From Haliotis rubra (Eukaryota): a stretch of DNA of 64,000 nucleotides. A program made the translations under genes and the position numbers. The notes under the pieces are model-generated. The model ran no database searches and was not told the DNA's origin. It saw nothing but the letters and a program-made list of their open reading frames with translations. Each line of letters begins with the position of its first letter. The stretch's first letter is position 1. The stretch is taken from the NCBI RefSeq assembly GCF_003918875.1, contig NW_025767431.1, positions 248,001 through 312,000 of the forward strand, in the 5' to 3' direction. Positions 2,388 through 59,573 of the stretch are shown here, piece after piece.

Positions 2388-2566
2388 AGAGGTTGCCCAC
2401 GGAAGAGGAGGAGAAATTTCCTGTTGCCTTCCCAGAGTTACCCTGCAGCGCCCGACCCGTCATCACATCTTCCGGAGGGGGTGACCTGTCCCCCGGCTCC
2501 CGACCCGTCACATCTTCCGGAGGGGGTGACCGATCCTCCAGCTCATCATTGTACACATCGGCTTGA
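2388..2566 (+). CDS. Terminal coding exon of an upstream TNFR-like paralog (gene 0); earlier exons not found in the window
   Basis: Acceptor ...ccataacacAG ends at 2387, phase 1. Translation RLPTEEEEKFPVAFPELPCSAR... aligns with the last exon of gene B (LPAEEETKFPTAFSDLPYSAR). Stop TGA 2564-2566. Confidence 0.75.
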
Positions 2567-3403
2567 GGGGTGACTTCTTATCCCCAGTAGGCCAGTACCC
2601 CATTCGTCAGCATCCTTCAGCATCCTTTGAGGATCTTCAGAGCTGAATCTTTGACTGTGTTACCACTTCGAACTTTCTAGGCATGTATTCAATGGAACAT
2701 GTTAAAACATAAAGTTATGTTATGTTACATGTGCTACCCAGACAAAAAATAAAGACAGTGTCACGCATATTTTCATATGACAACTAAACTGTATAGGCTG
2801 TTAGTATTGCAATAGCTTTCTACAGCAGTTGTAAGTGGTATCTTGAGTGATATCTTCAGGACCTGTTCAGGGTAGTCTCATAGTGTAACTTGATGTTACT
2901 AAGTGCGTGTGATAGTACTGCAGGTTCACAGTGCGTGTTCAGGGTTCAGCTACATTCCTTACTATAGTTAACATGTGTCTACATCGTGACACAAGTATGA
3001 ATCTATAAACACAGAAGGGTGTTCATTGATCATTTGATATACACCGTGGATTCATTCAAAACATCCGAATAAGCGTTATTACAATTTTCTTAGCTCATTT
3101 ACAAAACGACAGTATTTCTAGATGTGTATTAGAATGATGGAATGATTATCAAGTTAAGTTCTCACATTTTTGTACATTGTTGCTATTTTTACACACGTAC
3201 CTATATTTTAATATTTCAACGTCTTCAGTTTGAATTAAATCATTTATTGCATACTAATGGTAATGGTGGTGAGATGCATATGTTTGTGTACACTACCATT
3301 GTGGCTCAATCACCACTTTTACATGTTGCTGCAAGCATACCAGTTCATTACTGTTATCCAAAACACCGCTGTTCGTCAGTGGATATCTCATTTTCATGAC
3401 AAG

Positions 3404-3501
3404 GGGGCGGTTTGGTAGTCCAATGGTTAAAGTGTCCTTTCCTCACGCTGATTACCCTGGTTCGATTCCCCACATGGGTACAGTGTGAAGCCCATTTCTG
3501 G
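3404..3501 (+). mobile_element. SINE family A, 3'-truncated
   Basis: tRNA-like head ggggcggtttggtagtccaatggttaaag...ggttcgattccccacatggg. Confidence 0.75.
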
Positions 3502-4040: not shown

Positions 4041-4192
4041 CACAGGGGCGTGCCACGCTTAGAAACAGCGTTAGAAAGACATATAGGTATATAGACCCTA
4101 CCCTATTACTATATAAAATGATAGTACTAGGGTAGGGTCTATATACCTATATGTCTTTCTAACGCTGTTTCTAAGCGTGACACGCCCCTGTG
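4041..4192. mobile_element. Palindromic MITE (CA...TG termini, 8-bp TSD; P- or hAT-type)
   Basis: ~70-bp near-perfect inverted arms; flanked by gttaacat (4033-4040) and gttaacac (4193-4200). Confidence 0.8.
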
Positions 4193-4721
4193 GTTAACAC
4201 TTTGTGGAGATTCTAAGGCAGATTAAATCCGTGTACCCTCTGATCGCCATGAGAGCCGTAAAAGAGGATTAGGTGGTTAAAATGTTTGTCGTCATTGGTT
4301 ATTTGGCATGGTATCCATTGATAGTTGTTCATACTTTGTGTGGATCATGTCCTGGCTTGTCATGACCATGTCATATAGATATAGCCATGCTAACTGCGAC
4401 ATTGAACAATATTCACCAAATTAATCCATTGATAAGTCAGATGATAGTCTAGTGCTTATATCGATCCAGTTCATGCCACACGTATGTGTACAATCAGACC
4501 TCTCAAAACATCAATATTTGTTGTATTACCTTTACAATGAAATACAAAAATACGTGCTTACGTTATAGTCGTGACAGACAACAGCAGGGTAAAGTGTATC
4601 TGCCATCATTTCATGAATACCTTGTGGTAAGACTGTTACATGAATGTCACCACCAACTGAAGCACAACATACTTGATGTATGTAATGATAGAACACTGTA
4701 TGTGTTGTCTGGGTGTACTAG

Positions 4722-5070
4722 TATTCATTTTGTAAGGGTGTATTCATTTTGTAAGGGTGTATTCATTTTGTAAGGGTGTATTCATTTTGTAAGGGTGTAT
4801 TTATTTTGTAAGGGTGTATTCATTTTGTAAGGGTGTATTTATTTTGTAAGGGTGTATTCATTTTGTATTCATTTTGTAAGGGTGTGTTTATTTTGTATGT
4901 ATTTATTTTGTAAGGGTGTATTCATTTTGTAAGGGTGTATTCATTTTGTAAGGGTGTATTTATTTTGTAAGGGTGTATTCATTTTGTAAGGGTGTATTTA
5001 TTTTGTAAGGGTGTATTTATTTTGTAAGGGTGTATTCATTTTGTAAGGGTGTATTTATTTTGTAAGGGTG
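4722..5070. repeat. 19-bp minisatellite (tattcattttgtaagggtg)n, ~18 copies
   Basis: Directly visible period of 19. Confidence 0.95.
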
Positions 5071-8980: not shown

Positions 8981-9747
8981 GTAATTACAACAAGTAACAC
9001 TCCAAAGGTTATGACAAAGGGCCGGGTACATGCCCTAGAAGCTTAAAGTATACCAACCACCACCACCACCCCACCCCCACCCCCCACCACCCACACCCAC
9101 ACGAATAACACACAAACACACACCACAACAAATCAAGGCCATGTTTCGCTTCTAGGTTTAGGGGTGGGCTCGTTATTGTTGAGCATGTCATATCCTGACT
9201 ACTTTTCATTGCTGCAAAATTGTGTTAAAAGTCTGAAGTATATACGAAAATTGATAAGGGTGGGTGGGATAAGCAGATGTAGGACAGTGTGGTGCTGATG
9301 TTTGTCCCTGACCACCACCAGGGAGCAGAAGACACGGGTTCACAATATAATTCCAATTGCATAAACATGAAGTTGTTGGATTGAAACTAATCGTAAAAAA
9401 ACCGTACAAAAACTGTAGCACAGAAATTGAAATTATTTTATTACTTGTCTATACAGAGTGATACTATACAGATTGTTGCATATAAGTATGTTTTGATGAT
9501 CTCCATGGCGTTAGTTTAGCAGTGAATCATAGCTAAATAAGCACAAACGTATTTGGTCATGTGTTCACACACTCAGGGAGTGGTGTTTACGCTGTCAACC
9601 TATAGCCAGCCACTTTCAGCGAAAAGAGGTTAATCGATCGCTCTCCACCTACCGCCGTATACACTTCATTCAGTCTGGCGTATCTCTCGGGCTGGCTGGA
9701 CGTGTTTCTCTGCTCTCGCTGACAGCAACCTGTAAGAGGAAACAAAC

Positions 9748-12700
9748 ATGTGTTTATACCGCGTTACAGAACTGTTTGTCATTATAACGCTAGCTGTCTC
9801 TGTAAGTGTGTATGGAGATTGTCCACCGGGCAGGTATTTGGACCCAGTAACAAATAACTGTGATGACTGTGGGGATATCTGTGAACATGCGGACATACAA
9901 GGAACTCAGGCGGACTGTCAACGACTGTGTTCGGGTAAGAGTCATCACAGGTGTACTCAGTTCGTGTCAGTTTTATTCGTGTTGCTGGTTGCAAAGAAGT
10001 GTGTGACAAGGACCCTTCATTTCTAATTGGTTTATTCACAGTTCATATTCTTCTATTATATTATAACCGTCTAGTAGGGGTAGTGTATAGTGGTCCCACT
10101 AGAGCGGAAGGTCGGCGGTTCGATAGATTGCCGTGTCATATATGAAATGGGTGTGTGAGTGAGTTTAGTTTTTCGCCGCTTTTAGCAATATTCCAGCAAT
10201 AACACCAGAAATGGGCTTCACACGTTGTAGCCATGTGGGGAATTGAAACCGGGTCTTCGGCGTGACGATTGGATGCTTTAACCTATAGGCTATGGTGATC
10301 TACCTTCAGTTGCTGGGAGTCTATAGCCTGTTTCTACATTGTCTTGTTATTTCTAGTTAAAGTATTTTAGATTTAATTACTAGTTGTAAAGGGATATCTG
10401 TGATATACTTATAGTTTTACTGTTCTTCGTCAACAGGCTTTTAATTTCTAATTTTACTGATATATGATATAATAATTGATTGTTCTCGTCACGATATGGT
10501 TGAAGTATTGCCGATGTGACGATAAATAATAACTCACTCACTCACTCACTAGGCTACCCCACCGCTCCTTTGAAATGGGATAGAAACAGTTTACCTTTCT
10601 GGCCCTGGACTTGTAAGGATACAATAAGGACAGATAGTCAGCGAGTCAGTATATCAAATTAACCCAGTAGTTGTGTATTGTTTGTTAGACTCAGTGGCAG
10701 ATAATGAAAAATGGCATTTCGTTTGACGGATACAAACGAACTATCCCCATCCTCTCCACCCCACCAAATGTCCTTTCTCCGACTAGCCTGACACCAGAGA
10801 CCGTGTGTGGAAACACTTGTAGATTAAGGTTCCAATATATAACGAATATCTCGTGACAACTGAAATATATCAATAGGAATTGTAATATATTTCCAGCTGC
10901 CATTTAAATGTGCCATTAGTCTAAATGCCTGACATTGAGCAATTCCTACACTACAAAACGGCTATGCGTGTGTATAGTAGAGCTATAGATTTATGTGTAG
11001 CATCATGAACATATAAAACTGTGGTTGGTATCATCAGCTACTTGGAAGACTTCAAAGTCAAACGTATAATATAGTATCAATCAATGAACGTATTTATTGA
11101 GATTACATGAATAGGTAAACACATTCAATTCCAATTACAAGGAATTACTCTGCTCAGGTATCGTGATAGCAAATGTGTGATATTTCGCATTCATTTAAAC
11201 ATGTAAATGAACACTTGTGTATCAGGGTACCACCTGGATGGAGCAGCAACCACTCAGCTACCTCAGTGTCCTTCAGACCAGTACTACGACAGCGCCATAT
11301 CACGGTGTGACTACTGCAGTGTCATATGCGACAACCACGTCATACAGGGAACAACTGCCCAGTGCAAAGAAAAATGTCCGCCATGTGAGTGTCATTTATA
11401 TATTATGATCTAATACGATATTCACCTTCAAAATATCATTTTATTTACACACACACACACACACACAGAACTTTAACATACAGTACATTTACGTGCAGTG
11501 CTTTCATTACATGTTTCACTGGGCACGTGTTAAGAAACTGTGTTATAATTTCAGTTTAACTATAACAAATGTTTTAAACGATGTGCCATTATGCTACTTA
11601 GATAGACAGTGTGTCTTCCACGACACTATGTCAATATAACGCCACAAATGACTAACAGATGATATTTACACATCAAGCTACATTTTCCGAGACCGCTTGA
11701 AGCTCCAAACTATCGATAGTAAAAGTGCAAATTATGCTAAGTCATTTCTCCCAGATACAGTAAGATTGTGGAATTGTTTGTCTACCGATTATAGAGAAAC
11801 GGCTACTTTGGGTAGTTTTAAGAAACAGATTAATGGGTCAAATAATAATAATAGTCAAAATTACTTCAATTTAAGCTTTGGAACAAGATTCTGTCAGATT
11901 ATCCATTCACGCCTCAGGCTCGGTTGCAGCGATTTAAACGCACATAAATATCAACGATTTATATCCTCAAATCCCTCTTGTTCTTGTGGCTACTGTTATG
12001 AAGATCCAATTCACTATTTCTTTTCGTGCGTTAATTACACTGACATAAGACATAAAATGCACTTCTATACTAAAGGATATGACATCAAATCAATACTATA
12101 CGGCCACTCTCATGGATCTACTAAAGGTAATCTTGAATTATTAGAATCTATCCATTCTTTCATTGTACTGTCAGGCAGATTTGAGTTGTAATATATACTA
12201 GTAAACGAATTGCACTTACTATTAAGTATCTTCCGACACTAATGGTTCTAACATTAAAAGTGGCATGTTACAGTTTATGATTGTTACATTTCCAGAAAGC
12301 TATTGTTTATTGTTTGTTGATATCATGTTTTTCTCCGTACGATTATTATATCTATAATATATCTGTATTCCGGAGCGGTATTCATATAAGCACCATACTG
12401 CTTGTTTACCAATCCGGTTCCTCTTTTGGAAATAAATATGTTTAAACCAGATGATATCAAGTGAAAGAATTTATGATAAGCTTTTAACGGATTTATCCTT
12501 TCAGTAAGTGGTGCCCAATCGTATGATAATAATACATTCTAAACAATATTAGTCATGCTTGTATTTCAGACTTTGAACCGAAAGTTATTGAAAGCCAACA
12601 ACTCACACCCTTAGTTATAACTATCTGCTGTATACTCGGTCTGTGTCTTGTCTTGGTGAGCGTGTATGGCCTGATGGTGTGTTTCTGTGAACATCGTCTT

Positions 12701-13514
12701 CCATCTCGACTACAGCGTTGTCTCCCCTGCCTTATTCGTGGCTACAAGAAACCGGTAGAGTGCACCGAGTGTCACACAGATAGCCCCGGATCCGCATCAC
12801 TGACATCACTTAGTGGTTGTAAGTATGTGCTAAGTCAGGTTGTGTAAAGTCTGTTACTGAACAGTTCGGTTTAGTGCTTTAAAGTCCATGGTCATATAAC
12901 ACACATGTATATCATTCAAATGGGTCAGGCTGCACATGTATTGAATAATTCTATTGGTACTGAATAACATTACAATACAGTTCTAATTTTGAATGTAATA
13001 TACATATATTTTGACAGATGAATCATATTCACAAGTATTTAACAATGGATTTTAGTCTCATGTTGTGACGTTGGTAAGGAATACACATTTAGAAAGTGTT
13101 ATATACTTGGGATTACACTTTCTAAGGGAAGTACAGAATCTAGTACTCTGGGGGTTGAGTCCCATCCGGGATTCGAACCCACACTCTCAAAGTCAGCCAT
13201 CTAACCACCTGTGGAAGCCGCGATGGTTGAGTGGATGACTTTGTTGACACCAACCTAGTGTCCAGACTTAAACCTCTGACACTTGGGTCATCTAGAGCTA
13301 GTTTGTATGTAGCATCCTTGGAAATTACAAGAGTGATGAAGTAATTAGTCCGTGAATATTGTATATGCAGATTACCCTCGTACTTGTATGTGTTTCATTT
13401 GTAGACGAAGTACCCACCCCAGGGATTGCAACAATTCAAATGCCAAATCCAGAGTTTGGCTTGACAGAGCTTCAATACCAGCGTCAGTCATCAGGGGATG
13501 GCAGCAATGCCTAA
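9748..13514 (+). CDS. Gene A: type I membrane TNFR-like protein with two TACI/BCMA/Grindelwald-like CRDs, 234 aa; exons 9748-9934, 11226-11384, 12570-12818, 13405-13514
   Basis: Signal peptide MCLYRVTELFVIITLAVSVSVYG; CRD1 CPPGRYLDPVTNNCDDCGDICEHADIQGTQADCQRLC; CRD2 CPSDQYYDSAISRCDYCSVICDNHVIQGTTAQCKEKC; TM LVITICCILGLCLVLVSVYGLMVCFC; tail contains PVECTE. GT-AG introns, all phase 1; spliced frame open (705 nt). Confidence 0.85.
10156..10567 (-). mobile_element. SINE family A interrupted by a + strand insertion (10293-10549), intron 1 of gene A
   Basis: SINE body 10156-10292 resumes at 10550-10567; taggcta is duplicated around the insert. Confidence 0.8.
11666..12447 (+). mobile_element. 5'-truncated LINE (CR1/L2-group ORF2 C-terminus) in intron 2 of gene A
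   Basis: SFLPDTVRLWNCL...SRLRLGCSDLN...CSCG..EDP.HYFF.C zinc knuckle; AATAAA near the end; 10-bp TSD cagatgatat at 11656-11665 and 12448-12457. Confidence 0.85.
13075..13240 (-). mobile_element. SINE family B fragment(s), intron 3 of gene A
   Basis: gggattacactttc...aagtacagaatctagtact...ggattcgaacccacactctc matches family B in reverse. Confidence 0.65.
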
Positions 13515-14644
13515 CCCAGGTTGAAACTTGTATCTCACGTACCCATACGTGTCTGATAGCAATGTCAGTGCCATGGCCAAGCTGATGAAGACAGTAAGGA
13601 GAGAAGCTGGGTACCTTCACAAAGATGTTACCTGCCATTCAATGAACAGCTGGTCTCTTTGAAAAGAAGGAGATGTTACAGAATACTGGTTAAACCCAAC
13701 CTGCAGACTACTGCTCCCCTGCTGGACAGGTCTCACAGGGAATATTGTGTGTTTGTGAGTGACTTGCTCACTCTCCAAATAGATTTCACTTCAAGAAATC
13801 CTCCACTTGTAAAATTGTGGCATGCAGACATAATGACTTTATTTTCATGAACTGAAATCCGAAGATTAAGTTAAATTACTTGCAAGTATTCATTTCACAG
13901 ACTTCATAAAATATGAAAATGATTATTAATTATAATCTGATTTTCCGATCTCCGATATACAGTACTTGTTCTTAAAGTTGTAGTTTGTATATCTTGTGTC
14001 TCTGTGAATTAAGAAGTGTCAGTTTAGACTCACGCATGTGAGACACTGCTGTTATTTGTTATATTTCCCTGTCAAACACATTCGTGCCTTATGGAAGGAT
14101 TCTATTGTGTCACATTTAGACAATGGGGGAGCGTGTCGAGAGTGTTATTAATGCCAGATCGGGTTTCCAAGTCCTACAGCCTTGTGTCTGGGAACGTCAG
14201 GACAGTTGAAAAGAATTGAATGTCATTCTTCTGATCTTCGTTATCTCGTTTACGAAGTTCTTTTTCCCAACAAAAATGTTACCTAAATCTAGTAATAAGA
14301 ACATCGAAAATAAAAAAAAAAAAAAAAAATAATCAATATTGATCTATCATTCCAGCATACATAGCAAACAACACAACATGCCATTTATATAGATACTGGG
14401 AAATTGTGTCAGCGTCATTTAGATGAACCACATTCTAATTTTGAACGAAAATATTTTTAGCAAAACAAGTGATTGAGTCTTTGAAGGGCATTTAGAAGTG
14501 GTACACATAACATATCTACCTAGCGCTTGGGAACATATCTACCTAGCGCTTGGGACTTATTAATTTAATTTACCATCACTGCTGGTCTCTTTGTATTTAT
14601 TATTATTAGGTCTCGCTTCCATTTGTTTTCTTACAACCCCGTTA

Positions 14645-14962
14645 TATGCCACTATTGTTAACTACGCCTGGATTAACAATCCCTGGCTTCCTTTTGTCCA
14701 TCCACCCAGTTAGTGCTAATTATACCCCCTGGCTTCTATTTGTTTTTCTTATCAATCAGGCCTGGATTAACAATCCTTGGCTTCCACTTGTCCATCCACC
14801 AATTAACTACTGGCTACCTTTGTTATACTGTTGTTGTTTCAATATGTACATATATAGCTGTTTGTTCCTAATTGTTTCATTACCTGATGAAGGAGTAAGA
14901 ATATACTTCGAAACGTCGTGACCCTTCACAATAGAGAATTTGTCATCCATAAAAACTCTTGT
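14645..14962 (+). mobile_element. Penelope-like element terminal fragment with internal direct repeat
   Basis: cctggattaacaatcc..ggcttcc..ttgtccatccacc occurs twice (14666, 14760); ends with CTGATGA..GAAACGTC core and ttgtcatccataaa. Confidence 0.5.
14878..14921 (+). ncRNA. Minimal type I hammerhead ribozyme-like motif
   Basis: ttac-CTGATGA-a-GGAGTA(agaata)TACTTC-GAAAC-GTC-gtga: intact catalytic boxes, 6-bp stem II, 4-bp stem I, loop-less stem III as in Penelope-associated hammerheads. Confidence 0.5.
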
Positions 14963-17254: not shown

Positions 17255-19139
17255 ATGACAATAGGTATGTGCCGGTTGCTGGTGTCAGGACTTCTGTGGG
17301 GTAGCTACGCCTGTCTCGTTTACAGCTCTGAGGAGTGTCCCATAGGGACATACAGGGACTTTGGTTCTGGAAACTGTGACCCATGTTCAGATATATGCCA
17401 GTATATGAAGATAAAGGGAACTGAAGACGACTGCCGGAAATACTGTCCCGGTATGAATGTGTTATTTATATTTAGATTTAAGTCTATCCTGTTGGGAGTT
17501 CTGCCTACAGTTGAGTATGAACAAGATGAAAGTGTAACTATCATTGCCATGAACTACAGGTCCTTTAAAAGTTAATTTCCTTCTTTTATTAACCACGTTT
17601 CTTATCATCTCGTTCGCCCGATTTCGATACGATGTATATTTTGACTCTCAACATAGTATGCATATACAATGGAGGTTTCCTCGTCTCCACAAAAGATGAG
17701 TAAAGAGGGTAAAAACGAAATTCGACGGAAATAGTTTATCCCGACTCCACTTTATATATTTCTTGTGTTGCAGTTGACATTTGACACGCAATTAGGGATA
17801 AAGTAAAGTGAGTAAGTTGAAATATAACTAATATGAAAGAGACGAGAGAGATTTCGAATGCATAATAAATACAAGTTGTAATAATTGCAGTCAATATAGG
17901 AGTGAGTATTACAGATGTAAATCTAAAAACTATTTTACTTTTGAAGTCAATACAATATAAAAACAGACTACATGTCGCCAACAACTGAAAGTAGATAACC
18001 ACACCAGGAACTATAGGGACTTAAAGACGGCTTTTGTTACCTGCATAGACCCTAGCTGGATTAACATCTTCCCTTCTGCTGTTGGCGAATATGAGACATT
18101 TAGCCATAGCTAAAACGAACACATATTCTACGAATGAAAATGTTACAGAAATAATACACTTTGAAAGACGTGGTCTCATGTGCACTCTCAGGAGGACATA
18201 GTGATAAAGAGTTCCAAACCGGGTACCTTGTCATGGATGCAATCGCGTTCTTTTACAGATGCCTACACACTGAACCTTGCGAGTGAATCGAAAGTTGGTA
18301 TGTGTCCTTTTCTTAATTTCTTATTATGACAAGAAATACACTATAATATAATCCCGCTATTCATAATTATGATGTTTCCCATGGTCATGCTTGTATTTGG
18401 GTTTTAGATACATCTAGAGGATAAGTATTGTCACATCAATGACAGATGTTCTACTTAAGAAGACAATGAATGTTCAGTTCTTGTAACATGTGTATGGTGC
18501 TTTCTGTTGGTATTCATAAACATAAAAGCACATGATTTATGAAGAGTGAAATGATGCTATTTCGTTTCACAAATAGGCAATAAAGATTGGACCAAGAAGA
18601 CAACAGGCGACGAGGGAAGCATTCTCCCTGTAGTACTCCCTGTGTTAGCAGCAGTAGTGGTGGTCAGTGTGGTGATCGGGATCGTCGTTTACCGTCGTCG
18701 GCGTGTCAGTCGCAGACAAAGACCTATTCAACCTATTCACGATGACACACTGGTAGAACTTCCTTCAATTCAATGCACTGAAGAATCCGACAGCAGCTTC
18801 CATGTAGTTCCAATAGGTAATACTCATTTGGGATGTATTAAAATCACATCATGCTGTTTTTATAAAGCCATTAGTACTTCTTATTGAGCAGTCTATGCTC
18901 TATAGGGAACACAAAACATACATTAATGATCATCCATGCATAACCGTTTGTTTTAAATCTAACACGCATGTAACTACTACATCTACATAAGGTACACAAA
19001 GTATTATTTACAATAATTATTGTTTTCAGAGGAACAACAGTTACCGCTACCAGCAGAAGAGGAAACCAAATTTCCCACGGCATTCTCTGATCTCCCCTAC
19101 AGTGCAAGATATGACACTACTCAGCACGGATCGTACTGA
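17255..19139 (+). CDS. Gene B: single-CRD type I TNFR-like receptor, 194 aa; exons 17255-17450, 18259-18297, 18577-18816, 19030-19139
   Basis: Signal peptide; CRD CPIGTYRDFGSGNCDPCSDICQYMKIKGTEDDCRKYC; 39-nt stalk micro-exon (ttttacAG / GTatgt); TM LPVVLPVLAAVVVVSVVIGIVVY followed by RRRR; tail PSIQCTEE and PAEEE. Phase-1 introns, 585 nt open. The micro-exon is the least certain part. Confidence 0.85.
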
Positions 19140-34633: not shown

Positions 34634-37473
34634 ATGGCGATAACGTCTCCGAGTTCCTTTGCTTGTTTCGCCCTGATTGTGGTGTTTGTGGAAGGGAGGG
34701 GCATTTGTCCCCCAGGGACATATTGGGACCACGCCCTTGGAAAGTGCGATCAGTGTTCTAGTATATGTAACTACATGGAACAACAAGGGACGGTCACGTC
34801 ATGTGAAAGCAATTGCCCAGGTTGGTAAAAAAATATCTGTTGTTCATCGTTTGACGAGTCAGTTGAAGTTTCTCTCCCTCGCGAGAGAGGCTTCAGTATA
34901 TATCCAATTCGATTTTTATTCATCGCGCCAGGGGTTTAGGTGGGGTCCAGGTGCTTTAAAATTCTGTCTGTCAAATTTGTCGAACATTACTCACACCGTG
35001 CTTTGCTTAAACAGACGTGACAATGTATGTCATTATGAATATGTATAATGTCTGTATGCATTTGCTCATCTTCGATGTAGGGAGGATTGAAACTTTTATC
35101 CCATTCGATGTCTATTCATTGCTGCGGAACGAAAGAGAGGGTCCACGTGGTTTCGGTCTGTCACAACATGGCTACCAGTTGAATGAGCCCTACATCGTGC
35201 GTTCTCAAACACGCGTGTTAATAAATGACACGACGTATGAACCCCAGTGGAGAATGAAAGGAGTTATTCAATTATATTTGTGTTATTCCTTGATTCACCA
35301 CAGGTCTAGTCTAAAGAAAATGATAGAACATTCACGAACATTCGCGAACCTGCCAAATATAGAGCTGACAAGTTACAGATGTCAGCCAATCGGCGGTTAG
35401 ATAACTCCACCTACCTTCCAATCAAAAGCTGCCTCTTTCCGCTCAAGCTGTATGCACGCCAAACAAGGGAATTAACTCGTGAAAGCCCCTTCAACAAGAC
35501 CGTGTGTCCCACTATTAAATGTTTAACCAGGATGCCTGGAGTTGTATAGATACAATTCGTTGTAAAATGATGAAAGTTCATTTTTTCTATCCTTCTCTTG
35601 GATATATGGCCAAATGCCATATTTCAACTGTGGCAGATATTTGTCCGTTCTTTTGGATTAAACCAATGCAATTCTAGAATTTACCCTGTCGATAACATTG
35701 ATCCATTTGTTTATAAAATCATTAAACCTTTATTTCCAAATCCTTAAGTGCATAAGACTCAAATTATCACACAAAATATACATGTGATACTACCACTGCT
35801 TACCACAACAACGTACGGAAACGAAATGTGACCCCAGTACACCAATCTGCTCTTATGAGGCGATCAAACTGCTCTATCCCTGAAGATCCGGGTTAGAACT
35901 GTCTCACAGTCCTCGAACCACACTATGTTCCCTTCCGCCAAGCCCGTCTACAATAAAGCAAGATATCCTCAGGTTCATCTGAATCTTCCTTTTCAGATGG
36001 ACTCCTTTTCAATTTAAATTAAAATTTCCATTAAAGTTTATATAATGAGAGACTAAACGTTAGTCTAGGTCACTGACGTGACTGGTGCATATCGTCGTAT
36101 CCCAAAAGCGAAGAGCTAAAAAGCAGAACTTCATGGTTAATCCAAGAACAAAAAATAAACTTACAACTATAAAATAACCCCGTTTGATTTCGAGGCAGAT
36201 TAGCCGACAGGTTTCATAAGAATTACGGTTTACACGAGGACCGGATGGTCAGGCTGATTGAATGCTGTTAACATCAGGGTCAAGTTCAAGCAAGATCCAA
36301 TTCCAAAGCTAAAATGATTTTTTTTTCGTTATTTCATCACAAATATTTCCACACATATCAATCACTTAGAAAGAGTGATTTTTTCTGTATGCGGTAGCAT
36401 TCGTTATCCGATTCGTAACAAAATACTATTTTCCCAGAGTCACTGTAAATACCAAGTAGAACTTGTATCCTGTATTAGTGCCTTTCGTGTTGCAGGTTAC
36501 AAATCTTCCCACGATGTGCCCCCGAAGCCTGAAGACATTGCACCTATCGAGAACAAGGACACTAAGTCGACAGACGGAGTCACGATTGGTGTGTCGGTGG
36601 CTGCCAGCATTATAATCATCAGTATTATTGCAGGAGCACTTCTCCTACGTCGTAGTCGACGGAGTCGTGCTGCAACAGTTCCATCTCAAATTCTGGACAC
36701 ATCAGCACCAATGCTGTCCACTGGACGTACGTATGCATTAAATATTGTACGGGTAATATGGTCCCGTTAATAGTGAGTAAGTATAGTTTTATGCCGCTTT
36801 TAGCGATATTCCAGCAATATCACTGCGGGGAACAAAAGAAATAAGCTTCACACATTGCACAATGTGGGGAATCGAACCCGGGTCTACGGCGTGACGAGCG
36901 AAAGCTTTCACCACTAGGCTACCCTACCGCCCCATTCACATTAATAGTTGCATGGAGATTGTATCTACTATATCATTTCGATCAGTTACATTAACCTGCA
37001 ATTACATTTATAATATATATTTGTATGACTTCTGCATTTCCTTTCTTTTAGCTGTTTAGCCTCAATTTTATCAGAGCTGACAAAAGCAGTGTGTTTATAA
37101 ACATCCCGTCAAAACCATTTGGATGAGTTTTCTGCAGGATTCTGTACAAAAACAACCAATACCGACTATGATTAAAATAAGTCCCCCTCATCTCTAAACT
37201 GGACGGGTGGTTGGACTCGTTGACTTGGTTGCTTGTGAAGGCAAGAGGAGTTAGGATACTGCTGACGGCGGTGTTCAACGCCACATTAACGAGTAAAGCA
37301 GTTCTAACCCTTTTTTAAAAAAATAGCGTGGTAAGTTTTTCTAGAATCTGATATCTGCTTGACTGCCAAAGTGATTACACGAGTTTCATTTTTTAGACGC
37401 GAGGGAAAACAGACAGGAGGAGCAAGACCATGAACTGGACCGAGGTATTCCAGTCAACGATGGTGCTCACTGA
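34634..37473 (+). CDS. Gene C: single-CRD type I TNFR-like receptor, 164 aa; exons 34634-34820, 36496-36726, 37397-37473
   Basis: Signal MAITSPSSFACFALIVVFVEG; CRD CPPGTYWDHALGKCDQCSSICNYMEQQGTVTSCESNC; TM VTIGVSVAASIIIISIIAGALLL followed by RRSRR. Last exon HARENRQEEQDHELDRGIPVNDGAH* is less certain. Phase-1 GT-AG introns, 495 nt. Confidence 0.8.
35898..36068 (+). mobile_element. Relative of the 26466-26653 element, intron 1 of gene C
   Basis: Shared ctgtctcacagtcc..gaaccaca, ctccttttcaatttaaat and gagactaa..tagtctag. Confidence 0.6.
36773..36933 (-). mobile_element. SINE family A, intron 2 of gene C
   Basis: Full-length match to family A. Confidence 0.85.
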
Positions 37474-51400: not shown

Positions 51401-51517
51401 GTTCAACTGCCTCATGGTATGTCACTGAGCTTGCATGTTTAACTGCCCCATGGTATTTCACTGAGCTGGCGAGTCGAGCTGCCTCATGATATCTCACTGA
51501 GCTAGCATGTTAAACTG
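42437..51517. repeat. 36-bp satellite array (ctagcatgtccaactgcctcatggtatctcactgag)n, ~250 copies
   Basis: Continuous 36-nt period; minus-strand ORFs show the 12-aa repeat VRYHEAVGHASS broken by stops. Confidence 0.97.
47575..47708 (+). mobile_element. SINE family A inserted in the satellite
   Basis: 12-bp TSD tctcactgagct at 47563-47574 and 47709-47720. Confidence 0.9.
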
Positions 51518-52203: not shown

Positions 52204-53752
52204 ATGAAAGTACTGTCTTGGTTGGCTTTTCTATGGGCTTTCAGTGTATCCGATGGAAGAAAAGCATGTTCACCTGGAAGATATTGGGACTCTGGACTGG
52301 ATAAGTGTGATCTATGTTCTTCTATATGTGACTTTATGGAACAACAAGGAACTGCCAAAGCATGTCAAGAAAGTTGTCCTGGTCAGTAACATTTAATAAC
52401 GGTAATTTTCAACGGTATTTATTTGATTCATGTTAATTACGTATATACTCCTCATTGACGGTTTCGTAGCATGGCACTTAATGATAAGAGTGGAAATGAA
52501 AACCACGTGTTTGCTGTCAAAACATGGCGGTCAATGGACGAGAGAAAAGCTGACATATTTACAGAAAGGGACATAACTCAGGAAGGACTATTGTCACTAT
52601 AACGATGCAAAATCAACCAGCTCTATTGTGTAATATATGGTTTAAGCATTTTAAAAAACGTTTTATTTATAAAATCATTTTTGTTACGTATGTTATCATA
52701 TTATATTATAAAAGATAAACCTGCGAGCGTGTTGCTGTCCTTGCACCATGACTAAGATTCAGTTTAAATATACCCTTGTAAACATGTTTCAAAGAGCAAA
52801 CATTAATCATAGCTGTATTCAGTGAGCACGCTTATGGGTTCACGTAGGATGTTTGGCCAGTAGAGAATAGGAATTATTCTCTATGGCGGAAATTTATTAT
52901 CTGTTATATATATTTCATTACAGATTACAAATCGGTGGCTGATGCAAATCAAGCGAATGAACAATCAATCGTTAACGGTACAAGCATGATTGTGCCAGTG
53001 GTTGTATGTGCCATTGTTGGTGTGATCTGTAGTATTATTGTAGCCGGGTTTCTCCTTCGTCGGCATCGTCAACGACACACTGATGCACCATCTGACGAGC
53101 CCACCCCACAACCGCCACCTCTACCTCACTCATCAGTAACATACGTGGCTTTACCTATTCATACTCAGACGGAGGACACTGCAACATCTGCCTCGTCTAT
53201 AGGTACGTCATTAACTACGACATTTGACAAGATAAGATCACAACTTTCTAAATGAAGTAAAGGAATGTTATTTTTTACAACGAATTGGTAAGATGATATA
53301 TGTTGAAATGTCGACAGAATTTGACAAATTGAATAATGATATCAACATAGAATGTCAACTTCTGTCAAGCGATATACTAGTCATGACGTCACAATGGATA
53401 ATTGCTATGACGTCATGCTCAGTAACAACAATGATTTAACAAGCATGTTCAGATATATGATGCTTAACCAAAAGATAGTTCATGATACATGCCAGGAGGG
53501 CGAAAGCTTGAGGTTAATAATTTACTAAATAAGTAAATAATTTACCGTCTTTTTAATTTTTTTACATATCTTTGTTTTTATATAGATTGTAGTGGATAAT
53601 GCCTAAACATGTTTAAATACAACATTCGGTGTGTTTTTGTCTCCATAGGAGCATCTGCAGACCGACGGGAAGGCATAGAAGCGAATTTAATGGGTTACCC
53701 AGACCTTCCAGACCGATTTGAACCAATCGGTGACGACATCTCACCACGCTGA
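52204..53752 (+). CDS. Gene D: single-CRD type I TNFR-like receptor with ITIM-like tail, 186 aa; exons 52204-52381, 52924-53202, 53649-53752
   Basis: Signal MKVLSWLAFLWAFSVSDG; CRD CSPGRYWDSGLDKCDLCSSICDFMEQQGTAKACQESC (closest to gene C); NGT sequon in stalk; TM IVPVVVCAIVGVICSIIVAGFLL followed by RRHR; tail VTYVAL and GYPDLP. Phase-1 introns, 561 nt. Confidence 0.85.
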
Positions 53753-54482
53753 TGAGGACTCTGACCAGGATGGGATACATTTTAATTGGTGACATTATTG
53801 ACTTGGTCATAACACAGGATGATGGAACAGATTCAAGATTCCGCTATTGTGCATGCTGCTATCAAGCTGATCTTCCAGTGTACAGGAAAGTTTTTAGGAT
53901 TAATTCGTTTGGTAGAAACATAAATGTATTCTCAAAAATAAATTGCAGCCACAGTCGAGATAGATTTAAAAGAACCCAATATATTACACAATGTATGGAC
54001 GTCTGTGGTAATATGTGTGAATAGAGACATTATGTTAAAGTATGTGTTTGTTGACATTTGAATGAATGTGAAGTCTTTGTAAACGTTTAAATAGTGTGTA
54101 TCATCAGGCTGAAAGGTTCGGGAGTGCATTTGATAGGCGACTTGGCGTATGATCAGAAAGAGATGTTTGCTTTTGTATTTTAATGTTTCTTTTCATGAAC
54201 AATGCCAAGTGGCATTTGATTCTCGTTCACAGGAAGTGTTTTAGAAATATTCTTAATTTTTGTGTATGTATTTATGTATTCTTTTGATTTTTAAACAAAA
54301 GCTGGTAATCATTTAAAAGGATGTTATACCTTCATTCCACAACAGTTACAGTAATGCTAGTGACCAAAACTGCATTCAAAATCTATTTTGATACCGTGTA
54401 ACTACATAGTATTTCTAACTTTTCTACAAATTGTGTAAAACAACATGTGTACTTTTGTCCTATTTACTCTTTACAGAAAAAT

Positions 54483-54610
54483 GGTTGGTTTGTTGTTTAA
54501 CGCTACTCTCAGCAGTATTCCAGCTATAAGGCGGTAAATAATCGAGTCTGGATCAGACAACCCAGTGATCTACAGCAGGAGCATCGATCCACACAATTTG
54601 GATGCGATGT
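54483..54610 (-). mobile_element. SINE family C 3' fragment
   Basis: ctcagcagtattccagctata..taatcgagtctggatcagacaacccagtgatc. Confidence 0.7.
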
Positions 54611-55184
54611 TTGCAGAAAATGATTTAATGATGTTAATTGCACAAACCGTTATGGCATGAGAAAGTGATTACAAACAAATACACTTCCCAATCAAAATAA
54701 CAGACGAAGGGCAAAAGGGGCGACGCACCTCCATTTCCATGCAATATTGATACAGCTTTAGTCAACTGCATTTGTTCAGTGCTTTTCTATTGCACGGTTA
54801 GGTATATGTTCTTATAATATATTACATGTTCAATCGTTACATTTGTCATTGTCATATATCATTATATCACTCGTTAGATATAAAAATAAAAAAATAAAAT
54901 AAACAGACTCTATTGTCTTATTTTGCAGTTGAAAAAACCCAAACAAATCGGTTACGTTTCCTTCAATCGTGTGAGTCAAATATACTATAATGTAGTGTCT
55001 GAGATATGCCATTTACAGTTGAATGTACCTAGGCCGTTACGTCACTGTAAGTAGGTAAGAGCGTATTATCAAGTACAATACCTCAGTAGCGGGTCAGCCA
55101 AGTCATTTGAGACTTCCATTCACTCTGACAAGACGACCAACCGCATTAGTGGCTTCAAACTTAATCTTGAACGACAGTATTTTA

Positions 55185-58100
55185 ATGATGGGTCTCGGAA
55201 GTAGTCTTATTGTCATAATAGTATTATTCAGTGTTAGAGGATATGAGTTTTGCGATATCGGCTCATATTTTGACCCAGTAATTCATAGGTGTGATTTGTG
55301 TAGTAATATATGTGATAACATGGATTCAACGAATACCTATGAGGACTGCCAACGTAACTGCCCAGGTAGGTAAATGCTACATTAAATAAAAGTCATAAAT
55401 ATATCAAACAAAACGAACGTCTAACGTAATGTTCTAGAACTCTGAAAACTAAAATAGATATTTCATTGTCGTCAGTTCATGCATATTCATGAACTATATA
55501 TGATCGGCCAGTTCAGACCAGATTCACTGAATCCATAACATATGGTATCCATGATATAGAAGGCAATGCAACAGCCGAAAAGAGGAGATACATTCTTGAA
55601 ACAGACATTCATTTCTATCAAATGACTAAAAAATATTATGACTTGATGATTCCTGAAAATGATTCCATTGTAACTGCAAGATATGTTGGGAGTGGGGTGG
55701 ATATAAAAGGGTGTCCGGACAATAGACTATATTTGAGAACTATATCTTAGTTGTGCTAGATCGCATACTGATATGGACATAATATTCTTTTTATCGGTCG
55801 TTTTGGTTTAGAAAAAACATACTTCCTGGTCGACATTAATGCCCCAGTCACACATAGTCCTCACCCCCATCCACGTGTGCATAGACGCAGTTTATGTACC
55901 TGTGATGCTGCAACATTTTACCTGAAAGTACATGGCGGCTGCGGTTATATTTGTACTTACTGAACATTGATCTTCAAAGTCGTAGCTGTGCAGATGGGTA
56001 TTTATCCCGCCTAACGCCATTTTGCTTTCTAAAAGTAGGCTATCCGACGCAGGTCACAGTCTGGCAGTCGTTAGATAATATGCCGGGCCTTTCAAAGCAG
56101 ACAAATGTTTCGCTACGTTAGGTTTTGAACTCATGAGATGCGGGCGTTACAGAGTTAACTATAAAGTTCTGTACATTTTGATGTTGTTCATAAGCGCATA
56201 TTATAAGTGTTACACATATTTTATTCTTTCTTTAAATTAATAATTTGTATACATATTTGCGGGACTGGGAGTGTGTGGAGAGAGGGAGGGTGGTGGACGA
56301 GGAGGAGAATACATGTATAACCTCAGTACACGGTATATTCTGTTGTCAAGATTGCTGAAGATGTGGTTGATGTGATATTTGAAGGGGTCAATAATTGTAA
56401 TTAGCGACTTTGTACGTAATATTACGTCTTCAGGTCGATACGGAATGGAGCGATAAGGAAGCATAGTGATTAAGGCCCTGTTATGATTCGCACGGGTAAA
56501 ATGTGTGAAGCCCAATCTTAATCAGCGTTCGAAAATTAGGCTCGAAGCCGAATGAAACCCACACAGGCTCACAGCTTTGGTTTTCTGCAGGTGCTTATGG
56601 CTCTGTTTGTTGTGAATTACTTATACGGTAGCTAGAATATACGCCTGCACATTCTGATCAGGACCCACAACTATTTCTGGTTCTGGGACCTTAGGGCCTG
56701 CTGCCTTTCGAGGTTAGGGGCAAACACTGATCTTGATTCCTCTTCTGTGATATCACTGTAACTTTTGGCGGCGTTAAACCATAATAACCACAATCAGTGT
56801 GTGGATGTAAACCAGCGAAATACAGGATACATGTTATTGTCTTTATTTAGATTACGGTAAAGCGAAAGGGTGTTCGGACGATCAATACTACGACCAGAAC
56901 GTCGGGAGATGTGACTCGTGTGCGGAGCTCTGTCACGGAGAAAACATTCAAGACACAACGGAAGAATGCAAAGCCAAGTGCCCCAGCTGTAAGTCATCTG
57001 CATAAATCGAACAAACCAATAAAACCACCAAAGCACCAGCTAATTACACATCAGGAAGAAATATTCCTAATATATACTTCCCATCAAAAGTTTAGACTCA
57101 CAAGTGTAAATATAGCCACTTACTTCAAGCAACAATACTAAACTAGATTTTGCAAAATATTCCATACTGTTTAAAGGTACTGTTTACACATGAACTGATG
57201 CATTGTAAAACAACTTCGTAATGTTGAAATCATTATTGTAATGAAAATAATAAAACTCTGTGAAAATTCTTAACAAAACTTTACACCAAACGCAGCTGTT
57301 CACATGCACGATATTTGCACATGTTTTTCAACAATTTGATGCATGATCCTCGTGCAATTAATCGGCATAAGGTTTGCAGTTGGTTCCCCCACGCTAGTGG
57401 AGCAATCTATCGTCGATGTAACCATATATATATATATATGTATATATGTACATTGTGACGTTATGACAAAGTGACGTCATATCATATCTATTTAACTGTA
57501 ATCACTTCTCCCTGAAGATAAAATTGAAACATGTTGGAGAAGATCCGTGTCGTGTGATTATTTCAGAAACTTCTTCTTATATATGTACTACTGTACGCTC
57601 GGTATTCTCATCACTTTCTTTCTTTATATATATACACATATAGTGAGTGTTTTAAGTGAGTCTAAACTTTTCATGGGAAGTATATATGTAGAACACTGAA
57701 TAATTTGGTTAGTTGTTTTGATTTTTAACGCCGCACTCAGCAATATTCCAGCTATATGGCGGCGGTCTGTAAATAATCGAGTCGAGTCTGGGCCAGACAA
57801 TCCAGTGATGAACAGCAAGAGCAGTTGGGATGCGATGACATGTGTCAACCACGTCACAGAGTCTGATCTACATGGGTAAGAAAAATTGAACAAAGGTATC
57901 GCTTTAGAAGGTAATACATGTAAACTGAAAGCATTATGTTTTATCTGTACTGTGTAGAAATGTATATACATGTACACAGAAACATACCTTTAATATTATT
58001 TGAAACAATGAAGAATTTCTTTTAAAATAGTACAACACCTCTCATATCTTCCGCATCATAGACCTCCAATAATTCATGTATATTTATGTGTGGGAGCCTA

Positions 58101-59573
58101 TGCCACAATTATTGCATCTGTGTATAATGATCTCACTAATACCTTTGAAACACAACATCACCGAAGCTTTAAACAAATATTACAGTTCACCGTGGTGGAC
58201 CTGGTTCTGGTTCAGGAAGGTCGACGGGGCCAATTATTGCAACAGCAGTGACATGTTCCATCACCGTTATGGCAATTGTCATAGTTCTTCTACTTTGCCG
58301 GACCCAGCGTCTCCCATCAGTCTTACAGAGGTGTCGCCTGTATCCAGGAAAAGGCTATACTCAACCACAACAGTGCAGCGATGGAAGCGATACTTCAGGA
58401 TCTAACTTTTCTTCCGTCAGTAAGTACTTTCCTCTGTTTTAACTGGCAATTACTCAAAGATATCCCTCTACTGGGGACAGGGGATGTATGATGTACAGGG
58501 AATTTACTCAACTCATTGTCTTCTTATCTCTCATACAGGTCCAAGGGTATATCAGATTAATCAAGATTAATTAAGTCTCATTCACATCATAGTCACTGCT
58601 CCAACAGCCCCATCCTCCATACTTCAGCCTTATCCCCCATACTTCAGCTTCATCCCCATACTTTAGCTTCATCCCGAAACTTCAACCTCATCCCCCATAC
58701 TTCAGCCTCATCCCCCATACTTCAGCTTCATCCCCATACTTCAGCCTCATCCCCCATACTTCAGCTTCATCCCCATACTTCAGCTTCATCCCCAAACTTC
58801 AGCCTCATCACCCATACTTCAGATTCATCCCGTACTTCAGCTTTATTCCCCAAACTTCAGCCTCACCCATCCTTCAGTCTAATCCCCATATTTTGGCTTC
58901 ATCCCCATACTTCAGCCTCGTCCTCCATACTTCAGCCTCATCCCAATATTTCAGCCTCATCCTCCATACTTCAGCTTCATCCCCCATACTTCAGCTTCAT
59001 CCACAAACTTCAGCCTCACCCATACTTCAGCTTCATTCACCATACTTCAGCCTCATCCCTATACATCAGCCTCATCCCCCATACTTCAGCTTCATCCCCA
59101 TACTCCAGCTTCATCACCCATACTTCGGCCTCATTCCCCATACTTCAGCCTCACCCATACTTCAGCTTCATTCCCCATACTTCAGCCTCACTCATACTTC
59201 AGCTTCATCCCCATACTTCAGCCTCATTCCCAATACTTCAGCTTCATTCCCTATAAGGACATCTCTTGAAAAAGAAAAAACACTCAACAATCATGTCTGT
59301 GTTAAAAGGACAACAATAAAAAGAAGACAGCTTAGCAGCTTAAATTAAGAGACTTCAGAGCTCCTTAACACTAGAGGGTCCCCACATCAACTGATTGTAT
59401 TACAGTTACCTTTTGTGTGAGACTATTTTACAGTCAAATGGTCATATGTCCTTTCAGGTGACGTTCATCCACAAGTAACTGATGCCACTGCAGTTGTCAT
59501 GACAGAACAAGAGGGGTTTCCTGATTTACATACACAAGCTCGTCATAGTATAGTGGATGTTCTTATACACTAA
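55185..59573 (+). CDS. Gene E: two-CRD type I TNFR-like receptor, 222 aa; exons 55185-55365, 56851-56988, 58186-58419, 59458-59573
   Basis: Signal MMGLGSSLIVIIVLFSVRG; CRD1 CDIGSYFDPVIHRCDLCSNICDNMDSTNTYEDCQRNC; CRD2 (absent from the ORF track) CSDDQYYDQNVGRCDSCAELCHGENIQDTTEECKAKC; TM IIATAVTCSITVMAIVIVLLLC; tail RLPSVLQRC..GY.QPQQCSD homologous to gene A. Phase-1 introns, 669 nt. Confidence 0.85.
57708..57878 (-). mobile_element. SINE family C, internally deleted, intron 2 of gene E
   Basis: gccgcactcagcaatattccagctatatggcggcggtctgtaaataatcgagtc matches family C. Confidence 0.8.
58610..59250. repeat. ~19-21-bp minisatellite (ccccatacttcagcctcat)n in intron 3 of gene E
   Basis: About 30 visible units. 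Confidence 0.95.

Follow-up and report, generated by a model that had tools for sequence, protein, structure and literature searches.

The window analysed here, the whole stretch of 64,000 nucleotides at positions 248,001 to 312,000 of the Haliotis rubra contig NW_025767431.1, contains part of a tandem array of genes whose small type I membrane proteins are probably receptors of the TNFR superfamily. These belong to the single-module class of Grindelwald, BCMA, TACI and Fn14, with a putative TNF-ligand/TRAF function. Each protein consists of a signal peptide, one or two cysteine-rich domains (CRDs) of 41 residues, a short stalk, a transmembrane (TM) helix and, at the end, a tail of 51-87 residues that is predicted to be disordered. 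The array is a genuine expansion, specific to its lineage, of a known kind of receptor, and not a new kind of system.

Gene models and layout of the array

A six-frame scan for open segments found exactly seven CRD exons in the window, all on the plus strand, and the spacing C-x12-C-x2-C-x3-C-x11-C-x3-C is identical in all seven CRDs. The same seven were recovered by a hidden Markov model (HMM) built from 146 CRDs of the family (E 1e-15 to 1e-18), which gave no CRD match on the minus strand of the window. Every CRD exon is closed by a phase-1 GT donor at a fixed position after the last cysteine, phase-1 AG acceptors open the CRD2 exons and the TM exons, and five TM exons are located downstream of the CRD exons. 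GT-AG models are complete for five genes, A, B, C, D and E, which encode proteins of 234, 177, 164, 186 and 222 residues, respectively, all with the architecture given above. The coding features of the window are as follows.

2387..2563, plus strand: last coding exon of a sixth gene, whose upstream exons precede the window
9748..9934, plus strand: gene A exon 1, with start codon, signal peptide and CRD1; phase-1 donor CGG/GTAAGA
11226..11384, plus strand: gene A exon 2, CRD2, symmetric phase 1-1
12570..12818, plus strand: gene A exon 3, with stalk, TM helix and tail with PVECTE motif
13405..13514, plus strand: gene A last coding exon and stop codon (234 aa); guided by the H. asinina orthologue XP_067673466.1
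17267..17450, plus strand: gene B exon 1, with signal peptide and single CRD
18577..18816, plus strand: gene B TM exon, with SIQCTEE motif
19030..19139, plus strand: gene B last coding exon (protein of 177 aa)
34634..34820, plus strand: gene C exon 1, with signal peptide and single CRD (CRD modelled at pLDDT 93)
36496..36726, plus strand: gene C TM exon
37397..37473, plus strand: gene C last coding exon (protein of 164 aa)
52204..52381, plus strand: gene D exon 1, with signal peptide and single CRD
52924..53202, plus strand: gene D TM exon, with conserved tyrosine motif VTYVAL; from RNA contigs and model
53649..54840, plus strand: gene D last exon, with the CDS ending at 53752 (186 aa) and a 3' UTR to about 54800-54840; from RNA contigs and model
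55185..55365, plus strand: gene E exon 1, with signal peptide and CRD1; from RNA contigs and an exact XP_046549347.1 match
56851..56988, plus strand: gene E exon 2, CRD2; from RNA junctions
58186..58419, plus strand: gene E TM exon, with PQQCSD motif; from RNA contigs and model
59458..59573, plus strand: gene E last coding exon and stop codon (222 aa); 100% match to residues 186-222 of P0002

The exon at 2387-2563 matches residues 207-262 of the H. asinina protein P0033 (262 aa, two CRDs) with 78% identity by tblastn, and is also similar to the last exon of gene B. Genes B, C and D encode one CRD, genes A and E and the upstream sixth gene encode two, and relatives possess up to four. The gene E model is an exact match to the H. 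rubra RefSeq protein XP_046549347.1. A pattern search of the window did not find the 39-nt extra exon that is present in the gene B orthologue of H. cracherodii. The paralogues A-E exhibit a full-length identity of only 19-36%, and no death domain or other cytoplasmic domain was found at the Pfam cut-off in E, in a second copy of D, in the orthologues of A, B and C, or in four relatives. The first-pass annotation had described five complete plus-strand genes and one terminal exon, encoding diverged paralogues that keep exact cysteine spacing, a signal peptide, one or two CRDs, a TM segment and a short tail without a death domain; the CRD scan, the GT-AG models, tblastn and the Pfam search bear out this description. 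Among the other open reading frames of at least 130 aa in the window, a Tc1/mariner transposase at 62827-63663 is the sole Pfam match, and the remaining frames gave none.

Transcription and splicing

Spliced forms of D and E are present in RNA contigs from three samples (X1-X3), and a DNA contig from the same species reads unbroken across the introns of both genes. The gene E junctions 55365/56851 and 56988/58186 occur in X1, X2 and X3, and the RNA contigs place the start of the gene E transcript at or before 55076. For gene D, X1-X3 cover 52923-53195 and resume at 53642, which fits the GT-AG junction 53202/53649 because the seven bases on either side are near-identical. RNA runs contain 0.12-0.15 of the words of the stretch that comprises A and B; the splicing of A, B and C is predicted from this share, the GT-AG models and orthologous RefSeq proteins. 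Of the junctions proposed for checking against RNA, those of D and E are seen in RNA contigs and those of A, B and C are predicted.

Fold of the cysteine-rich domain

When the profile of 146 CRDs was compared with the PDB, BCMA and TACI filled ranks 1 to 12 (E 4e-4 to 4e-3), their six cysteines all aligned, and Grindelwald (6ZSY) was found at E 0.057. An AlphaFold (AF2) model of the gene C CRD, with a pLDDT of 93, places a hairpin before helices. As modelled, the CRD is a beta-hairpin with one predicted disulfide followed by a helix-loop-helix with two C-x3-C pairs. Cysteine spacing and model together describe a six-cysteine domain of about 40 residues with a hairpin module and then a helical module, which would agree with the two modules and three disulfides characteristic of the TNFR superfamily. 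In a model of full-length E, a signal helix is followed by two CRDs, a TM helix and a tail without ordered structure.

Foldseek with the CRD model gave Fn14 (rank 1), BCMA, Grindelwald and TACI as top ranks, with E-values that are not significant owing to the 41-residue size of the model, and so rank composition and VIA-align were used instead. VIA-align superposed 40 of the 41 residues on Grindelwald with a Z-score of 5.4 and 25% identity. In an unbiased structural scan of 48,161 solved chains, five had Z>=2: Grindelwald (5.0), two of BCMA, Fn14 (2.7) and TACI. The Z-scores are modest overall, at 2.7-5.4 including VIA-align. Single-exon Pfam scans were also tried and gave sub-threshold matches only; no window CRD reached a Pfam gathering score, the best being TNFR_c6 with 23.2 bits against a cut-off of 29.4. 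Among the 146 CRDs, 57 match TACI-CRD2 and 55 match BCMA-Tall_bind, all below threshold, and only three touch the Fn14 model. The agreement of profile ranks, model and structural scan supports a predicted fold of the TACI/BCMA/Grindelwald/Fn14 type. This is the fold that the first-pass annotation had proposed, and the Foldseek comparison that it had suggested placed its three named receptors in the top ranks together with Fn14.

It is very unlikely that this resemblance is convergent and that the CRD is an unrelated disulfide-rich domain, such as a peritrophin/CBM14 hairpin or a laminin-EGF-like domain, that happens to share the cysteine spacing. The N-terminal CxxGxYYDxxxxxC half partly matches chitin-binding peritrophin-A proteins and a polyphenol-binding protein; however, these matches span profile positions 2-16 only, whereas the full-length six-cysteine matches are exclusively BCMA, TACI, Fn14 and Grindelwald. 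Convergence would be in keeping with family-level scores that are all sub-threshold and with a Gigantopelta member that was automatically named 'laminin subunit alpha-like', but two Batillaria members are tagged 'TNFR-Cys domain-containing' in UniProt, and the type I form, TM helix and short tail constitute the architecture of small TNFRs. Long proteins with 4-19 partial matches are of the chitin-binding peritrophin type and were excluded from the family, as the hairpin half alone matches.

Distribution, synteny and earlier descriptions of the family

A profile of the seven window CRDs found 141 proteins among 1.84 billion representatives. With a few close relatives fetched later, this set holds 143 full CRDs in 105 proteins, and the exact spacing is present in 98 of the 143. 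All nameable matches are mollusc proteins, nearly all of which are labelled 'uncharacterized'. A homologue search with protein E and a 51-protein alignment returned almost only Haliotis, given that candidates were chosen by shared words, and says little on taxonomic spread. The order A-E is conserved in H. cracherodii, and a partial order of A-B, C and then a D-like CRD is seen in H. asinina. Duplication of the genes and of the symmetric phase-1 CRD exon predates the split of the Haliotis species compared. Synteny, which the first-pass annotation had suggested as a check, is found in two other abalone species, and the lineage expansion put forward at first pass is supported by the mollusc matches and the tandem array. 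The accompanying suggestion that annotation easily misses such genes or labels them uncharacterised is correct in respect of their labels, which read 'uncharacterized', but not of the genes themselves, which RefSeq does model.

Mollusc homologues of Grindelwald have already been listed in a preprint. This HMM-based study (10.1101/2024.07.27.603686) identified 115 Grnd-like receptors of invertebrates with a custom HMM, among them grnd homologues from the molluscs Crassostrea virginica and Mizuhopecten yessoensis; neither a grnd receptor of abalone nor a genomic cluster is mentioned in its main text. It also describes 12 grnd copies in the annelid Capitella, a lineage-specific expansion of the kind seen in the abalone array, and large TNF ligand sets in molluscs, with up to 27 paralogues in one species. 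A BLAST-based preprint (10.1101/2021.12.26.474206) reports PITA-type TNFRs and no Wengen homologues in Lophotrochozoa, and derives Wgn and Grnd of flies from PITA by divergence. A literature search by taxon words returned no mention of Grindelwald.

Selection on the paralogues

Nei-Gojobori estimates of dN/dS were obtained for five pairs, four of them orthologous and the fifth formed by both D copies of H. rubra. The overall values were 0.24-0.71, with 0.11-0.34 in the CRDs and 0.28-0.86 in the stalks and tails, indicating from sequence comparison that each paralogue is kept under purifying selection. An immune receptor family in an arms race, with a ligand face under diversifying selection, is on this evidence quite improbable. 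Such a family would be expected to show the tandem expansion seen here, the low identity between paralogues, the variation of hairpin-tip residues from one paralogue to another, and orthologues that are just 68-79% identical between abalone species. The fast change, however, lies in the stalks and tails, the hairpin tip of gene B is identical across three species, and the CRD of gene D is identical in the two H. rubra copies. On the Nei-Gojobori estimates from the five pairs, positive selection within the CRDs is rejected and diversifying selection is unsupported. The 'diversified ligand faces' of the first-pass annotation thus apply between old paralogues only, and not among orthologues, whose CRDs are constrained. 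The immune role that it had called probable is a hypothesis.

Putative ligand binding and signalling

By analogy with the Grindelwald-Eiger and BCMA-APRIL complexes, the hairpin tip and the inter-helix loop would bind a TNF trimer in the groove where two subunits meet, and the paralogues may differ in which ligands they bind from the expanded TNF set of molluscs. Px(Q/E)x(T/S)-type motifs in the trimerised tails could then recruit TRAF adaptors, with JNK/NF-kB as the signalling output. Across 88 family tails, the TRAF2-type motif [PSAT]x[QE]E is present in 35, compared with a mean of 18 in shuffled tails, and the TRAF2-type motif PxQxxD in 10, compared with 1.6; the relatedness of the motif-bearing sequences inflates both enrichments. 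The family tails as a whole show no enrichment of TRAF6 or ITIM consensus motifs. Gene D possesses the conserved tyrosine motif instead of a TRAF-type motif, and this could be an ITIM-like or a YxxPhi endocytic signal.

A DxL motif lies at the hairpin tip of BCMA, TACI and BAFF-R, and its leucine is used by all three for ligand contact. The aspartate is invariant in the window CRDs and kept in 90% or more of those of the family, but the leucine never occurs in the seven window CRDs, which have A, V, G or N at +2. BAFF and APRIL orthologues are not known from molluscs. The missing leucine, together with Grindelwald contact residues that are not recognisably kept, is what would be expected if the proteins were true TNFR-fold membrane proteins that do not serve as receptors for TNF ligands but as orphan or adhesion-type proteins, co-receptors or receptors for a non-TNF ligand, with the CRD as a scaffold. 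TNF-independent roles have been reported for Wengen (PMC11377715). This alternative is unlikely, since all the solved relatives found are receptors for TNF-family trimers, TRAF-type motifs are enriched in the tails, and the mollusc ligand sets are large (10.1101/2024.07.27.603686). A putative function as receptors for TNF-family ligands is preferred.

Implications

Flies (Grindelwald) and vertebrates (Fn14, and BCMA, TACI and BAFF-R in B-cell biology) have well-studied small single-CRD TNFRs. On how these are related to each other the two preprints differ: the BLAST-based study is without lophotrochozoan Wengen homologues, whereas the HMM-based study lists mollusc and annelid homologues of Grindelwald. 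The abalone array provides a concrete, transcribed and syntenically conserved gene set for the question of homology. Since its CRD mixes features of both receptor groups, homology is testable by structure determination and ligand binding. The array also supplies candidate receptors for the large and mostly orphan TNF ligand repertoire of molluscs. Blacklip abalone are farmed and are affected by Vibrio and herpesvirus disease. Speculatively, the mollusc family might be a lophotrochozoan link, with Grindelwald, Fn14 and BCMA/TACI all derived from one ancient bilaterian single-CRD TNFR, and with an abalone array of a dozen or more genes pairing in various combinations with the expanded TNF ligand set, in which TRAF-motif receptors would activate and the tyrosine-motif receptor of gene D would inhibit.

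Comparison with known receptors

Drosophila Grindelwald (PDB 6ZSY, 6ZT0) is the best structural match of the abalone CRD. All seven abalone CRDs share exactly the helical-module spacing C-x3-C-x11-C-x3-C, which is the Grindelwald C2 consensus (PMC8024323), and on both sides the receptors are small, of type I and devoid of a death domain. Intracellular binding to Traf2 and Veli/Lin7 is a further characteristic of Grindelwald. The single CRD of Grindelwald is also the arrangement of B, C and D, but differs from the two CRDs of A, E and the sixth gene. The hairpin of Grindelwald is an X2 module with two intercalated disulfides, giving eight cysteines, whereas the abalone CRD has six and a single hairpin pair (C-x12-C).

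The best matches by sequence profile are BCMA (TNFRSF17) and TACI (TNFRSF13B), short receptors that lack a death domain and act through TRAFs. Both share with the abalone CRDs a C-x12-C hairpin and a Y-x-D motif, and the hairpin is followed by C-x2-C in BCMA as in abalone; their second module, however, has a spacer of 8 residues compared with 11 in abalone, and reads C-x3-C-x8-C-x3-C in the BCMA alignment. Fn14 (TNFRSF12A) possesses a very short, TRAF-binding tail. Its single six-cysteine CRD has a one-disulfide hairpin and then a C2 helical module (PMC8024323), as in abalone, but the cysteine spacing of its helical module differs. As modelled, the abalone CRD would combine a one-disulfide hairpin of the BCMA/Fn14 type with a helical module that has the spacing of Grindelwald.

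Gene models and CRD exons

A six-frame scan of the window, which has no N runs and a G+C content of ~39%, found seven Cys-rich open segments on the + strand, all with the pattern C-x12-C-x2-C-x3-C-x11-C-x3-C. An alignment of these seven cysteine-rich domains (CRDs, 41 residues) contains ten invariant columns, namely the six Cys, Y8, D10, D17 and T31. An HMM built from 146 CRDs of the family, the proteins that match the CRD profile, recovered the same seven and no others in the window (E 1e-15 to 1e-18) and had no CRD match on the minus strand. Every CRD exon is closed by a phase-1 GT donor at an identical place past the sixth Cys, phase-1 AG acceptors open both second-CRD exons and all five transmembrane (TM) exons, and further downstream there are five TM segments of strong hydrophobicity. 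Orthologous proteins guided the construction of five complete GT-AG models (genes A to E), and a sixth gene is present as its last exon.

Genes of the cluster in the window
2387-2563, + strand: sixth gene, last exon, 78% identity to the C-terminal end of an H. asinina protein of 262 aa with two CRDs
9748-9934, 11226-11384, 12570-12818, 13405-13514, + strand: gene A, two CRDs, 234 aa, GT-AG model
17267-17450, 18577-18816, 19030-19139, + strand: gene B, 177 aa, GT-AG model
34634-34820, 36496-36726, 37397-37473, + strand: gene C, 164 aa, GT-AG model
52204-52381, 52924-53202, 53649-53752, + strand: gene D, 186 aa, GT-AG model
55185-55365, 56851-56988, 58186-58419, 59458-59573, + strand: gene E, two CRDs, 222 aa, GT-AG model

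The first-pass annotation had described a tandem cluster of mini-TNF receptors at 2388-59573, with five complete models and one terminal exon, and the seven CRDs, the five GT-AG models and the last exon of the sixth gene show this description and its coordinates to be accurate. The gene B ortholog of H. cracherodii has an additional 39-nt exon between its CRD and TM exons (10454-10493 of locus L004), for which a simple pattern search of 17451-18576 found no counterpart in the window.

Distribution, synteny and paralogy

A search of 1.84 billion representative proteins with the seven-CRD profile returned 141 proteins at E <=1e-3; these and a few close relatives added later provide 143 full-length CRDs in 105 proteins, and 98 of the 143 have exactly the spacing of the window CRDs. 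Every match that can be named is a mollusc protein, from gastropods (Haliotis rubra, H. asinina, H. cracherodii, H. rufescens, Gigantopelta, Babylonia, Nucella and Batillaria) or bivalves (Ruditapes, Mercenaria, Potamilus and Mactra). Most have the label 'uncharacterized' or 'hypothetical'; two are tagged 'TNFR-Cys domain-containing' in UniProt, and one has been given the wrong name 'laminin subunit alpha-like'.

The order A-B-C-D-E is kept in H. cracherodii within about 36 kb. In H. asinina, A and B come after the upstream two-CRD gene, and an overlapping locus has C and then a D-like CRD; gene E was not seen at the H. asinina loci examined. RefSeq numbering suggests that more family members lie just upstream. 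Between the A and B orthologs of H. cracherodii sits a lone half-CRD with the last three Cys of the domain (L004 8272-8334), probably what remains of a CRD exon or gene that has been lost. Full-length identity among the paralogs is 19-36%, and CRD identity is 32-62%. No two paralogs are closer than A and E, whose second CRDs match each other best, indicating that the two-CRD form is old.

Transcription and annotation

The gene E protein is identical to the Haliotis rubra RefSeq entry XP_046549347.1, 'uncharacterized protein LOC124259284', and RefSeq also carries models for orthologs of A, B and C. The stretch 52340-58339 was covered with contigs from three probable RNA runs (X1, X2 and X3, their kind marked 'RNA?') and one DNA-like run. 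Gene D is spliced in one contig per RNA run, spanning 52923-53195 and then 53642 onward, and its 3' UTR extends to about 54800-54840 in these contigs. Gene E is spliced in X1 and X3, where a contig spans about 55080/55120-55363, 56849-56988 and 58186 onward, and the 56988/58186 junction is also present in X2. Small offsets between RNA and GT-AG junctions reflect identical or near-identical bases flanking each junction. A contig of the DNA-like run, from the same species, reads straight through the D and E introns, and so the stretches skipped in the RNA contigs are introns, not deletions. Across 9700-19200, a fraction of 0.12-0.15 of sampled words occurs in RNA runs of the same study, approximately the exon share of that stretch.

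Two segments of the D 3' UTR, 54201-54234 and 54476-54621, are lacking in the RNA contigs, as they are in the DNA contig from another individual, and are therefore indel polymorphisms or skipped repeats rather than introns.

Second copy and repeats

A second H. rubra locus (L003; QXJH01000573.1, 628321-650187) is collinear with 42.4-60.9 kb of the window (satellite, D and E) at 83-91% nucleotide identity, and may be either a highly diverged haplotig or a segmental duplicate. The D CRD does not differ between this locus and the window, and the E CRD2 of this locus is apparently truncated, with only the second half detected. The satellite has a 36-bp unit and fills ~9 kb between C and D (42437-51517, about 250 copies, 74-80% matches); it also precedes the D-like gene of the second locus (L003 1-9196). 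Two further family members are present on another contig.

Other repeats are scattered through the window. Extreme word depth in all runs, reaching millions in the DNA run, and many repeat-type joints mark 54340-54739 and 56940-57939 as high-copy interspersed repeats in the D 3' region and the second intron of E. Near-identical arrays of 175-bp period, 2.9 copies each and 4.6 kb apart, lie between B and C (25089-25587 and 29735-30233) and probably represent one mobile element present twice. A tandem repeat of 20/39-bp period (about 17-34 copies) occupies 58605-59251 in the last intron of E, and a 19-bp repeat lies at 4721-5070. Downstream of E, a 278-aa ORF (62827-63663, + strand) has Tc1/mariner-type transposase domains (HTH_Tnp_Tc3_2, E 2e-11, and a weak DDE_3).

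Selection

Nei-Gojobori ratios were calculated for five pairs. Four are ortholog pairs, with H. asinina as the partner for A and C and H. cracherodii for B and E; the fifth compares window D with the second H. rubra copy. Overall dN/dS is 0.24-0.71; in the CRDs it is 0.11-0.34 for the four ortholog pairs, the two D CRDs being identical, and outside the CRDs it is 0.28-0.86. By these ratios purifying selection acts on the CRDs, and the stalks and tails drift fast; this favours functional genes and speaks against a ligand-face arms race.

Architecture and cytoplasmic tails

In the full-length E model a signal helix precedes two like-folded CRDs (pLDDT about 80-93), and the TM helix (121-146) leads into a disordered tail. 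A Pfam search of E, the orthologs of A, B and C, the second copy of D and four relatives gave no Death-domain match, and no other cytoplasmic domain reached its cut-off. The TRAF2-type consensus is Px(Q/E)x(T/S), and the tail motif [PS]-x-[QE]-C-[TS]-[ED] common to A (PVECTE), B (SIQCTE) and E (PQQCSD) fits it; C has PSQILD, and D instead has VTYVAL. Of 88 family tails, 35 contain [PSAT]x[QE]E (shuffled mean 18, maximum 28) and 10 contain PxQxxD (shuffled 1.6, maximum 7), and neither the TRAF6 nor the ITIM consensus is enriched; because related sequences have motifs in common, the counts are suggestive at most. The Tyr block of D, HSSV[T/A]YVALP, and its last-exon motif [FY]-P-D-L are conserved both in the ortholog from H. 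cracherodii and in the second copy of H. rubra, and the Tyr motif also fits a YxxPhi endocytic signal. Just inside the membrane, A (12570-12818) and E (58186-58419) have a Cys-rich juxtamembrane motif, RLPSxLQRC, absent from B, C and D, that could be a palmitoylation or adaptor site.

Domain identity and comparison with known receptors

Single CRDs gave only sub-threshold Pfam matches, to TNFR_c6, TACI-CRD2 and the Fn14 model; among the 146 family CRDs, 57 touch TACI-CRD2 and 55 touch BCMA-Tall_bind, always under the gathering score. When the 146-CRD profile was searched against all PDB sequences, the twelve best matches were to BCMA and TACI (E 3.8e-4 to 3.6e-3), all six Cys being aligned, and Grindelwald scored E 0.057. 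An AlphaFold2 model of the gene C CRD, made from the family alignment (mean pLDDT 93), has three short helices after a beta-hairpin (residues 7-10 and 15-18). Foldseek ranked Fn14, BCMA, Grindelwald and TACI at the top for this model, with E-values that are not significant at 41 residues, and VIA-align placed Grindelwald first (Z 5.4, 40/41 residues aligned), with BCMA next (Z 3.7). A Foldseek-independent scan of 48,161 representative chains provides the cleanest evidence, since only five chains reached a Z of at least 2: Grindelwald (5.0), BCMA (3.4 and 2.8), Fn14 (2.7) and TACI (2.7). The modelled fold is thus supported as a member of the small TNFR CRD class, and the TACI/BCMA/Grindelwald-type fold proposed in the first-pass annotation is upheld by the PDB profile search, the model and the scan.

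According to one preprint, homologs of 'grnd' number 115 across invertebrates, including molluscs (oyster, scallop), with a 12-copy expansion in Capitella, and a single mollusc has as many as 27 TNF ligands; the main text mentions neither a grnd receptor from abalone nor a genomic cluster (10.1101/2024.07.27.603686). A BLAST-based survey reports that Lophotrochozoa have TNFRs of the PITA type, but found no Wengen homologs there and regarded fly Wgn and Grnd as divergent PITA descendants (10.1101/2021.12.26.474206). A literature search found no paper characterising the abalone A-E genes. The abalone array is a lineage-specific expansion of a known kind of receptor, whose ligand, signalling route and immune role are putative.

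The Grindelwald C2 module has the consensus C57-x3-C61-x11-C73-x3-C77 (PMC8024323), a C-x3-C-x11-C-x3-C spacing that is exactly that of the abalone CRDs, whereas the Grindelwald hairpin is a two-disulfide X2 module and the abalone hairpin has one disulfide. The abalone CRDs share the x12 hairpin spacing of BCMA, but the leucine of the BCMA/TACI DxL motif is replaced by A, V, G or N in the seven window CRDs. With one x12 Cys pair and the Grindelwald C2 spacing, the abalone CRD is therefore a one-disulfide hairpin joined to a C2-type helical module, and the antiparallel helices of the model would give that module a nested disulfide pattern. The same composition was described for Fn14 in the Grindelwald structure paper (PMC8024323). 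The domain composition is an informative mix of Grindelwald-type and BCMA/Fn14-type features.
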